Assembly (NCBI GenBank): GCA_001179505.1
Contig: CDMY01000621.1
Span: forward strand, 1 to 41,190
DNA: 41,190 nt
Source of the DNA: Vitrella brassicaformis CCMP3155
Lineage: Eukaryota; Protista; Chromerida
Reading direction: 5' to 3'
The translations under genes were made by a program, and so were the position numbers. Of this stretch, positions 31,136 to 34,833 are shown piece after piece. Under the pieces are notes generated by a model. The model did not search any database. It was not told the origin of the DNA and was given only the letters and a program-made list of their open reading frames with translations. Position 1 is the stretch's first letter, and each line of letters begins with the position of its first letter.

Positions 31136-33697
31136 CTAGCTATTGGCTTCCTCCTCATCCCGCTCTGTGCTCTTCCTCTCGGGGCTCCCCTCCACAGACA
31201 CCGACACGGCACCATTCGGGCTGCCCGCCCCGTCCCCCTCCCTCTCAGACACAGCAGCCTCAGGCGGCTGCCTGTCAGCCCCCCCGCCACCGCTGCCATC
31301 GTGTGGCGGCACTGCTGGCGCCGCAGTAGCTGGATTGCCGATGCGACTGAACCACGGCTTCGCGAAGCCGCCTGCGGCTGCTGGTGTCGCCGTGTTGATG
31401 GGGTGCAGCCCATTGAGGGCCAGCGGCGCCTTGACGCCATCACGGCCGTCCTCCCTGGGTCCATATGTGCTGCTGGGAACGCCGTTGGTGACATGCGGTG
31501 AGTTGGCCGCGGCCGCCATGGGTTGGGGGGGCGATGCGACGCTTGAGGGTGCCGAGGGCAGGTCGGCTGAGAGGCTGTCGAGGGTCTGTTCGAGCAGTGT
31601 GCGGGCGGCCTGTACGCGGGACATGTCCAAGCCAACGAACGCCTGAGGAATCCAGGAAGATTGAGAGCGTGGCGGCGGTTCAGCCGTGATCACATGTTGC
31701 CTGTCTGTATGGCGTACGTATGATTGTTGCTTCTGCTCGAAACCGATGCACTTGAGCAGCGCCGGTGTGGACCGTTTCGTGCCCAGACGCTCTGCACGCA
31801 CACAAGCCACACAGACAGCTCATGTGTGTGCGCCTTAGTGAGGGCACCGATGTGTTGTGGCCTCACTGACCATTGAATCGCGCGCTTGACGCGTTTATCT
31901 TTCGGTACCGGTCGGCGTCAGGATACGTCAGCAGGTTCTTCAATATCAACTGCAACCATACACACACTCTCCCATTAGCATCTCCTCCCTCTTTCTTCTC
32001 CCCGATCCATCCATCTCCAGCGGCTCCACCCACCTGCAGGGTGGCCAGTGTCTTCTTGGCCTCCTCCCTGCCCTCACAGTCGTCAACCAGGGCACGCACA
32101 CACGCCGACACCTCACCATCGACCGCTGCCATCTCTCGCGCGTCCGATGCAGCAGGCGACGGCGACGTTGGCCGCGACGTGGGGGGCTGCTGGATGGCGT
32201 CGGTCATCGAGGGCATCACGCCATCCACCTCAGCAGCACCGCTGGCCTGGCGCAGAAAGCAACAAGGAGGATGCCTTCCGCCTTTCTGATGCATGTCTTG
32301 CCGGCTGTCAACGGCTCACCTGGGATGGCCTTTGGTGCTGCTGCTGCTGCTGTTGGAGCAGGCTTTTGATGACGCCGGCCATCTCCCGCAGCTCGTGCCC
32401 CTGACGCTGGACCATATCCAACAACTGACACGACAGCACATACAAACAGACATGGGCGAGATGACCTTGGGCACTCATCGGGTTGTCATGTCAGTCAGCC
32501 TCACCGCGTCCTCCCGCCGCTTGACTTCGTTCTTCATCTCCCGGATCTCATTCGAGAGGGCAAACGACATCGACAATGACATGGGAGGCATGCCAGGGCT
32601 CAACTCATCTGCACACAAACGCACACACGAGGAACATCAGACTCAGCAACACGTGTCTGACCACGCCCGGCTGTTCCCCTGGCTGTGTGCTCACTGACCT
32701 GCCTCTCCGTTGGTAGCAGCAGCGGCAGGGATAGGTCTGCCGTCCATGTGCTCGTCTCCTGCCCTCCTCATGCCCAGCCCCCTGCCGCCCCGCCGCCCGC
32801 TGTCGTCCTCATCGTCACCTTCCAGTGGCAACGCACCACCGCTCTCGGCCGCCTCACGGGGAGCAGCAGCCGCCTCCTCGATGCGCCACTTGGTGTACAT
32901 GTCCTGAGCAATCAGTGAGGGAAGGAGTCGTGACACAGGCGTGTGTGTGTTGTGTGTGTGGTTCTGTGGTTTTGTGGTTGCTTGATTGGGTAACCCACCC
33001 AGACATAGTGGAGAATGGCATATGCGCCGAAGGATATGATCATGGGCACAGTCCACTCCTGCAGACGCTGAACCCAACCCTTGCGACGGCCTGCACCACA
33101 GCCACACCGTCAAGCCAAGCGAACGATGTCACATCCACTACTCTGTTCTCCCTCCCTCCCTCCCTCCCTCCCTCCCTCCCCTCTCTCACTCTTGATGCGT
33201 CCGTAGGGGTAGGGATACGAGCCGAGGGGATAGGCGGCTGGGTAGGGCGGGGGCGGCATGGAAGAGGGCACCAACGCAGAGGCCACAGCGGGGGTGGGCG
33301 ATGGAGGTGACGGAGAGGGAGATACCTGAACAGCAATGTTAGCACCAGGGGGGAGGGCAAACAACCATCACATCGCCTACCGCACAGACACACACATCGG
33401 TTTCTTTCCCAGTCTCACCTGCGTCTGTTGTTGCTGCTTGACGCGTTGGAAGGCCTCGGCAATCTCGCTGTCCGGCAGTCCCTTCTTCTTTAGGAACTCC
33501 CTCTTCTGCTCCTCAGACGCCGCTTGCACTGCTTGCGCGCCAACCACCCCGATATATGCAGCCACAATCACAGGAAGGAGATATCGACATAGATGCGCAT
33601 TCAGCGTGTGTGTACCTGATGGGTGTGACAGGAACCGCACCGCGTTCTGCACCTGGTCCTCCCGAATCGTCCCATTCGCTGGTGGGGGACTGCTCAT
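31136..33697 (-). CDS. PEX14: Peroxisomal docking protein PEX14 with a C-terminal PUB domain, about 11 exons
   Basis: IREDQVQNAVRFLSHPS|AVQAASEEQKREFLKKKGLPDSEIAEAF is the Pex14 N-terminal domain. A Pro/Tyr-rich linker, a TM segment (WTVPMIISFGAYAILHYVW) and a coiled coil (NEIREMKNEVKRREDA|RQGHELREMAGVIKSLL) follow. Then AKKTLATLQ|LILKNLLTYPDADRYRKINASSARFN|ERLG..ALLKCIGFEQ is a PUB signature. All junctions are phase-consistent. Confidence 0.88.
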
Positions 33698-33949
33698 GTC
33701 AGTCAGCGAGATCAACGAGATACAAAAGCGAACGAATCATGCTCGTTCTGATGCACAGATTCGCCACAAGCCCAAAGGAATCTGCTTTTCCCTTTTTGGC
33801 TTCAAGCTCGCAACACGATCGCATCGCGCCAGGAGCAAAAGGGCGTTGAAAGAATCCTTTGCTGTGCAGCGGCAGGTCCGCAGATGACGGCTACACAGCG
33901 GCATTGGCATCTTTCACTCCCCTGAGTGCCGCACCGTATCCAGTCGAAT

Positions 33950-34833
33950 ATGCCGAAGAATCTGTCCTTGTTCGGCAAGTATCTGCGTAAGGTGGGCAAG
34001 ATCCACTGGCGGGGCTTCAAGCGGCACCAGATCGCCCACCCCATCCCCGTCAAGGCGTACGGCAGGGAGCCCACCGCGGCGGCGTCGACGGGCCTGTACC
34101 ACGATGAGGACTTCAACTACTACTCGTACATCGTGTGGACGATGGACAAGTTCTGGACAAAGGCCAAACCCAACACGTTCAAGAAGGACATTAAATCCAA
34201 GCGGCTCAACACGGAGATCAAAAACCTCAGAGTCACCACATCAGGTAGAGAGGAATGTGTGTGTGGTGTTTATTGCGTGCGTGCGTGCGGTGTTGGTATG
34301 TGCTGTGCAGCGCTTCACGCGATGGACGACATGGGTGGGTTTGACGAGTACATTTTGCGGACGCCGCCGCAGGAGATGCGGTCCAACATGGGCGAGCGGA
34401 TGAGAAACGTCATGTACTTCTACCAACACAACCCCGGTGGGTAGGGTAGGCCGGGGCCGCACGGACGGACCACCACACACATATGACTGACTGACACGGA
34501 TGGATGGATGGATGGAAGCACGTTTCCCTCTCTTTGTATGTCTATTTGTCTGTTCAGAGGTCCGCGAGTGGGCTCTGCCGTGGAAGGTCTTCTTGCGGTT
34601 CAAAGACCAGGTAGGTACGCGCAGTACGAAGGAAGGGCGTCCATGCATAACCATCACTCACACACATGCTGTCGTGCTTGTTTATGTGTGTCAATCGGAT
34701 TGAGTCAGCGCGACCCCTACTTTGCCCGCCACTGGCACTACCTGCGGAAGGAGAGGAATGAGAAGTGGTTCGGCAAGGCGTGCGCCAAATTCTCACCCTA
34801 CTACCTGCCTCCGGAAGAAAGTACCTACAACCA

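Follow-up and report, generated by a model that had tools for sequence, protein, structure and literature searches.

A Pex14 with a PUB domain in the chromerid Vitrella brassicaformis, and its candidate AAA ATPase ligands

One question about alveolates, where Pex13, Pex15 and Pex26 are missing (PMC5755239) and have either been lost or diverged beyond recognition, is how the export ATPases are held at the peroxisomal import site. It is taken up here with a stretch of 41,190 nucleotides from the chromerid Vitrella brassicaformis CCMP3155 (contig CDMY01000621.1 of assembly GCA_001179505.1; "the window" hereafter means this whole stretch), which carries on its minus strand, at 33697-31136, a gene for the docking peroxin Pex14 whose reading frame continues into a PUB domain. 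A Pex14 with a built-in adaptor domain of the Cdc48 type is an obvious candidate for holding the export ATPases. Vitrella lives free, and one group (Ludewig-Klingner et al., PMC5755239) has put this alga forward as a model for the peroxisomes of apicomplexans; these authors list Pex14 as present in it and do not discuss its domains.

The sequence-only reading of the locus had left in doubt whether a Pex14 of this architecture was already catalogued. It was: in 2017, Moog et al. (PMC5737649) described the Pex14 proteins of Toxoplasma gondii and Chromera velia as having a PUB domain and proposed that it is a docking site for AAA ATPases, for interaction with Pex1/Pex6. Full-text literature searches returned no further relevant paper on a PUB-bearing Pex14, and in the searchable literature the subject amounts to one sentence since 2017 and no experiment. 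What is new here is that the fusion extends to Vitrella, that the p97-binding pocket is non-canonical, and that a matching tail appears to be present on Cdc48 paralogues only. Taken together, the three points turn a vague suggestion into a specific binding question, which is an incremental advance and not a new kind of system.

The exon chain and the Pex14 half

The gene consists of 11 exons with 568 codons and a TAG stop (1707 nucleotides). The chain was traced by hand on the minus strand and then checked by script for splice sites, phases and length. All ten introns start with GT, end with CAG and measure 73-99 nucleotides, with phases consistent at every junction, as the sequence-only reading had claimed; no ATG precedes the one at 33697 in its frame, and the surrounding DNA has a G+C content of about 60% and short GT-AG introns. 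On these splice sites the whole chain is predicted to be carried by one transcript, and we hold that this is very probably a real Pex14-PUB fusion gene.

Domain searches were run exon by exon or on stop-free read-throughs of the in-frame introns 1, 8 and 10. Exon 1 (33697-33616) opens with the ATG, contains the start of the Pex14_N domain (Pfam PF04695; 15.1 bits over profile positions 2-16) and ends in phase 1; exon 2 (33528-33419) holds the remainder of the domain (..REFLKKKGLPDSEIAEAFQRV..) and scores 32.3 bits alone. Read through the in-frame intron 1, the two exons together reach 46.3 bits, above the Pfam cut-off of 23.2 bits. In a six-frame scan of the 72.7 Mb assembly, which is in 1064 pieces, the exon 2 match was the only one above threshold, and the gene at 33697-31136 is the only detectable Pex14 of the organism. 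The Pex14_N translation includes AVRFL and REFLKKKGL with the conserved groove aromatics. By the human PEX14, the two phenylalanines of AV[KR]FL and FLKKKGL belong to the grooves that bind the WxxxF/Y motifs of Pex5.

The rest of this half follows the Pex14 plan. Exon 3 (33325-33190), with no Pfam match, encodes the linker that precedes the membrane segment on its N-terminal (lumenal) side; this linker is rich in Pro, Ser and Tyr and contains PxxP motifs and YPAAYPLGSYPYPYG. Exon 4 (33090-32999) encodes a basic stretch followed by the sole hydrophobic membrane segment, WTVPMIISFGAYAILHYVW (about 33055-32999), a run of 19 hydrophobic residues read directly off the translation with RRKGW just before it. 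Exon 5 (32903-32699) gives a charged, disordered-looking linker in which a Pfam search found no match. Exons 6 (32608-32505) and 7 (32424-32320) encode charged, helical-looking segments, the latter with a poly-Q end, that by eye look like a coiled coil. Thus the order that the sequence-only reading had proposed, with Pex14_N, membrane segment and helical region ahead of the PUB domain, is borne out, the coiled coil by eye only. The Pro/Ser-rich linker of exon 3 ends in a Tyr-rich run, PPYPAAYPLGSYPYPYG, which faintly resembles the Tyr/Gly-rich region of Pex13, undetectable in alveolates; the run is too short for any claim.

The PUB domain and its relatives

The PUB domain is spread over the last four exons. 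Exon 8 (32246-32034) begins as a Ser/Pro/Ala linker and ends with the presumed first PUB helix (32111-32034). Exon 9 (31949-31871) encodes the core, LILKNLLTYPDADRYRKINASSARFN, matched below the cut-off by Pfam and also by hhalign. Exon 10 (31791-31718) continues it as (E)RLGTKRSTPALLKCIGFEQKQQSY, with the conserved GF motif, in the register given by hhalign and colinear with human PNGase. The terminal exon 11 (31642-31136) supplies in its first 24 codons (31642-31571) the presumed last strand and helix (AFVGLDMSRVQAARTLLEQTLDSL); the remainder (31570-31136) is a disordered tail of 144 residues, rich in Ser, Pro, Ala and Gly, which ends in the acidic ..ERDEEEANS before the stop and matches nothing in Pfam or the PDB. 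Since this acidic-ended tail follows the PUB domain, the latter has been inserted before the usual acidic Pex14 tail and not merely appended to the protein.

Against the Pfam PUB profile (PF09409; 82 positions, curated cut-off 34.3 bits), exon 9 scores 19.2 bits (E 0.0012) over profile positions 13-37, the score falling below the cut-off because only 25 of the 82 positions lie in this exon. Exon 10, exon 11 and the read-through of exon 10, intron 10 and exon 11 gave no Pfam match, and a sequence search of the PDB with the two stop-free pieces gave nothing; the solved PUB structures were reached only through a reference profile, built from an alignment of six PUB paralogues of the same genome, which matches the structures of UBXD1, PNGase and HOIP with E values from 3.5e-13 to 6e-4. 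Exon 9 aligns with this profile at columns 23-46 (hhalign 92.6%, E 4.7e-7), and exon 10 gives a weak local match, PALLKCIGFEQK on columns 57-68. The register across the phase-1 intron 9 is exact, F374 falling on column 46, N375 on 47, the Glu of the split codon on 48 and R377 on 49, so that the junction restores the PUB domain without a gap; the segment encoded by exons 9 and 10 also aligns gap-free with that of human PNGase. When a hidden Markov model of the six paralogues was run against all stop-to-stop pieces of the window, the piece with exons 8 and 9 ranked first (E 9e-4), and the piece with exons 10 and 11 was not significant. A feature search of the ESM atlas, to be taken as a lead only, had PUB clusters as its three best named matches. 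Judging by these alignments, we consider the PUB domain real, at about residues 324-424, a call that rests mainly on exon 9. The PUB peptide and the position given for it in the sequence-only reading (about 32060-31575) were correct, and the bounds can now be refined to 32111-31571.

Pex14_N and PUB thus stand in one predicted polypeptide, the latter C-terminal to the membrane segment, as described for T. gondii and C. velia. Compared by published description, the Pex14 proteins of these two species share with that of Vitrella the Pex14_N domain, the membrane segment, PxxP motifs and a less conserved C-terminal part with PUB; they also share its lineage (chromerids and apicomplexans), in which there is no detectable Pex13 either. 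The Vitrella Pex14, which was itself not described by Moog et al. (2017; PMC5737649), is a further member of this known architecture and the counterpart of the T. gondii and C. velia proteins. The canonical Pex14 proteins of animals, fungi and plants, such as human PEX14, yeast Pex14p and Arabidopsis PEX14, resemble it in their Pex14_N domain, which has the core FL..KKKGL, in having a single membrane segment followed by a region that is helical or a coiled coil, and in their C-terminal tail, which is disordered and acidic. What the Vitrella protein has in addition is the PUB domain, about 100 residues long, which comes after the coiled-coil region and ahead of the tail. To our knowledge, no PUB domain has been described in an animal, fungal or plant Pex14.

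The PUB domains of PNGase/NGLY1, UBXD1/UBXN6 and HOIP/RNF31 (PDB 2HPL, 6SAP and 4OYJ) align without gaps with the Vitrella core N-x-L-x-x-P-x-x-x-[KR]-Y-R-x-I..F..R-L...L...G-F-E; unlike them, the Vitrella domain is part of a membrane protein, with its coding sequence divided among four exons. A PUB domain is also found in SPATA2, a soluble protein of animals that links CYLD to HOIP. Like that of Vitrella Pex14, it is without the first tyrosine of the pocket, and it offers an earlier example of a PUB whose partner is not a p97-type tail (PMC6995525).

Topology, candidate ligands and the binding pocket

Pex14 turns its globular N-domain towards the matrix of the organelle (PMC6862443, PMC12925559). 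With a lumenal N-domain and a single membrane segment, the coiled-coil region, the PUB domain and the tail would all lie in the cytosol, where Cdc48 and Pex1/Pex6 are found, and by analogy with other Pex14 proteins the PUB is in all likelihood cytosolic. There, close to the import machinery, it would most likely be a site where an AAA unfoldase, or a partner of one, can land. The best candidate partner would be cytosolic Cdc48, bound through its C-terminal EEDLYS, and the landing of Cdc48 on the Pex14 PUB might help in the extraction or quality control of the receptor or of peroxins, in a lineage where Pex13, Pex15 and Pex26 have not been found. A single-gene Pex14 with a cytosolic PUB as landing pad for an AAA unfoldase or its partner is the reading towards which we lean, with moderate confidence; that the partner is Cdc48, through its tail, can be proposed only tentatively.

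The candidate ligands were sought in the same genome, in which three loci carry CDC48_N. The Cdc48 encoded at C603 begins like cytosolic Cdc48 (..NRLIVEEAVNDDNSVV..), and its terminal exon, which lies behind a CAG acceptor about 350 nucleotides after the penultimate exon, ends in FGQQAEEEDLYS and a stop (..EEDLYS), a predicted tail that is a textbook PUB-interacting motif. In a further Cdc48 paralogue, at C275 (L021, C275:239800-249700, minus strand, about 5844-5620), both Walker A motifs are intact and the acidic tail closes with EAELY and a stop, which makes it another potential PUB ligand by its sequence. A second cytosolic-Cdc48-like copy with the N-terminal NRLIVEEAVNDDNSVV motif is seen at C22 (L020, C22:66500-76400, minus strand); its first Walker A motif is altered (GRSGCGKT), a TGA lies inside its CDC48_N match, and it may be a decaying duplicate.

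The sequence-only reading had proposed an inventory of PEX1, PEX6, PEX15 and PEX26, and this could be filled in part. Pex1 is found at C592, with an apparent end ..QRVALA; its PEX-1N match reaches 27.1 bits when the genome is scanned in six frames and 22-25 bits when pieces are searched singly. For Pex6 there is a candidate only: a type II AAA gene at C395 with a degenerate D1 (GPHGCGKRS, LMEDLD), a good D2, no CDC48_N and an apparent end ..RPVRITA is the best one, its identity unproven, and the Pfam family PEX6_4th has no match in the genome. The Pfam Pex26 family likewise has no match in the genome, a weak negative that agrees with the literature. Two other genes were considered for Pex6 and set aside. 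The one at C415 is a proteasomal Rpt-like subunit; the one at C258 (L023, C258:139500-147041, at the contig end) gives the best match to the D2 exon of Pex1 and looks to be of the NVL/Rix7 type. The latter encodes a type II AAA protein in which neither ATPase domain is degenerate; its N-terminal part includes ..YPDYKRKKVGALKQWV.., and it resembles nuclear NVL/Rix7, not Pex6.

In the DNA taken around Pex1 (C592) and the candidate Pex6 (C395), no frame on the gene strand ends in an acidic-hydrophobic-aromatic motif. As far as these predicted ends go, only Cdc48 paralogues, and neither Pex1 nor the candidate Pex6, carry a tail that matches a PUB. Hence, if the PUB binds a tail motif, its ligand would be Cdc48 and not Pex1/Pex6, and if it binds Pex1/Pex6, the contact would have to be of a new kind. 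The proposal that p97 is tethered alongside or instead of Pex1/Pex6 survives in part: "instead" is unlikely, as Pex1 is present and a Pex6-like AAA gene exists, and "alongside" may be true. A cytosolic Cdc48 with a predicted EEDLYS tail is at hand.

Whether the pocket could accept such a tail depends on a few residues. PUB domains that bind the p97 tail (DDLYG) have a YxxN(x)9Y core, formed by Y38, N41 and Y51 in PNGase and by Y181, N184 and Y194 in UBXD1 (PMC6995525). A further asparagine, the cornerstone of these domains, is N58 in PNGase, N201 in UBXD1 and N102 in HOIP (PMC4017264, PMC6995525), and Arg55 of PNGase clamps the free C-terminus of the bound peptide (PMC4017264). The equivalent residues of Vitrella Pex14 were mapped onto PNGase by alignment through the paralogue profile. 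N41, Y51, R52, F61 and R64 of PNGase are kept, as Asn354 (31937-31935), Tyr364 (31907-31905), Arg365, Phe374 and Arg377, respectively; K50 is conservatively changed to Arg363; Y38, R55 and N58 are replaced by Ile351 (31946-31944), Asn368 (31895-31893) and Ser371 (31886-31884, codon AGC). The sequence-only reading had named loss of the peptide-binding pocket as something that would speak against its proposal, and the result lies in between: the equivalents of Asn41, Tyr51 and Arg64 are there, while Tyr38 has become Ile, Arg55 Asn and Asn58 Ser. The pocket is thus neither lost nor canonical, and binding of a p97-type tail is predicted to be weaker, or altered in specificity, compared with PNGase and UBXD1. 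Among the paralogues of this genome the first tyrosine position is the more variable one, several of them having Leu there. The cornerstone Asn does not vary among the six that were aligned and recurs in two others, and Pex14 is the sole PUB without it among those examined in the genome. The AGC codon of Ser371 is one base away from AAC (Asn), and the change may be a sequencing error or a polymorphism.

Several of these observations speak against a PUB landing pad on Pex14. The pocket reads IxxN(x)9Y (Ile351, Asn354, Tyr364) and not YxxN(x)9Y, and its cornerstone Asn has given way to Ser371. In UBXD1, the substitutions Y181A, N201A and N201D raise the dissociation constant for the p97 tail about 8-, 5- and 20-fold (PMC6995525). 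The domain, scored in pieces because of its four exons, stays under the Pfam threshold in every piece, and its presumed first and last helices, encoded by the end of exon 8 and the first codons of exon 11, reach no significance of their own against the profile. An all-database HMMER search with exon 8, the in-frame intron 8 and exon 9 (125 residues, 97 of them exonic) gave no match with E up to 0.001, the protein itself included; this search covered a representative library of 1.84 billion proteins, and the blank is silent on novelty, the annotated Vitrella Pex14 evidently being absent from that library or present without these exons. On the side of the ligand, the phase of a strong donor at position 5054 of L019 does not agree with that of the CAG acceptor ahead of FGQQAEEEDLYS, and the C603 Cdc48 therefore probably has one more small exon or uses a different donor. 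Finally, the link between exons 7 and 8 of the Pex14 gene is predicted from the sequence, and the single transcript is the main point of uncertainty.

Alternative readings, other PUB loci and flanking sequence

The pocket is also the starting point of a different explanation, namely that the Pex14 PUB has given up motif binding and, like the SPATA2 PUB, holds a different partner (a deubiquitinase, an E3 or a ubiquitin-like domain, for example) as a scaffold would, or is merely structural. SPATA2 has Val where Vitrella has Ile at the first pocket tyrosine, and no motif binding was found for it (PMC6995525). The cornerstone Asn that Ser replaces in Pex14 is present in eight paralogues overall, and the clamp Arg55 is replaced by Asn; in PNGase, loss of Arg55 opens the domain to internal motifs, and the PNGase PUB has a second face that binds ubiquitin and Rad23 (PMC4017264). 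However, Asn354, Tyr364, Arg365, Phe374 and Arg377 are all kept, Ile can still line a hydrophobic pocket, in which several paralogues have Leu, and Ser can still donate a hydrogen bond, and the avidity of a hexameric Cdc48 for an oligomeric Pex14 could offset weak individual sites. We regard the loss of motif binding as unlikely, although it is the alternative that fares best.

The suggestion of Moog et al. (2017; PMC5737649) would have the PUB recruit Pex1/Pex6, not Cdc48, and stand in for the missing Pex15, Pex26 or APEM9. With these tail-anchored receptors of Pex1-Pex6 there is a possible functional analogy, an AAA unfoldase being brought to the Pex14 docking site in both cases. Pex15 and Pex26 are undetectable in alveolates (PMC5755239), and the Pfam search for Pex26 described above agrees; mammalian Pex26 and yeast Pex15 bind Pex14 (PMC6862443), so that an AAA-binding module fused to Pex14 would shorten the chain; and the altered pocket could reflect a ligand other than p97. 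But the ligands known for PUB domains are D-L/M-Y motifs, whether at a C-terminus or internal, and none is found at the apparent ends of Pex1 or of the candidate Pex6, whose assignment to C395 is itself unproven. Moreover, Pex15, Pex26 and APEM9 have no relation in sequence or fold to the Vitrella PUB, and they bind the N-domains of Pex6, not its tail. Recruitment of Pex1/Pex6 in place of Cdc48 appears to us quite improbable. The same low probability attaches to a broader proposal, in which the Pex14 PUB of chromerids and coccidia would be the missing membrane anchor for receptor export, tethering either Cdc48, through EEDLYS, or Pex1/Pex6, which would meet the remodelled pocket in a non-canonical way. 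If this proposal were true, the recycling of peroxisomal receptors in these organisms would use an adaptor logic like that of endoplasmic reticulum-associated degradation, unseen in animals, fungi and plants.

That two genes have been merged, a short conventional Pex14 made from exons 1-7 and a PUB protein with its own start at one of the in-frame Met codons within exon 8, is very improbable: retention of intron 7 would indeed end the frame after VSR (stop at 32310-32308) and yield a conventional Pex14 of 281 residues, but this intron is a canonical one of 73 nucleotides (GTGAGC donor, CAG acceptor, phase 0 to 0) that leaves no room for a terminator and a promoter, the first 45 codons of exon 8 are in-frame linker, and the fusion is also present in the gene models of T. 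gondii and C. velia (PMC5737649). Within the single fusion gene, which we prefer, retention of intron 7 (which starts with Val-Ser-Arg-stop at 32319-32308) could possibly produce the PUB-less form of 281 residues as a regulated isoform.

The Pex14 gene is not the only place where PUB domains occur in this genome. At least nine other loci were seen (L001-L010, at C27, C466, C733, C553, C204, C677, C573 and C488), and in five of them one exon is enough to pass the Pfam cut-off, while a sixth passes it once its neighbouring match is counted. The human PUB proteins named in the papers cited here are PNGase, UBXD1, HOIP and SPATA2, and PUB fusions look like a theme of the Vitrella lineage.

Within the Pex14 gene, introns 3 and 4 hold simple repeats, (GGGA)n-like at 33185-33140 and CA-rich at 32985-32935, respectively, and CA/GT-rich tracts like those of intron 4 were also seen in the introns of other genes inspected. 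Upstream, a plus-strand open frame at 33926-34444 (MPHRIQSNMPKNLSLFGKYLRKVGK..), in which Pfam found no match, points away from the Pex14 start at a distance of about 230 bp. The two frames being divergent, the 5' end of the Pex14 gene should fall within the gap of about 230 bp between them, and the open frame may be a small gene that shares a bidirectional promoter with Pex14.

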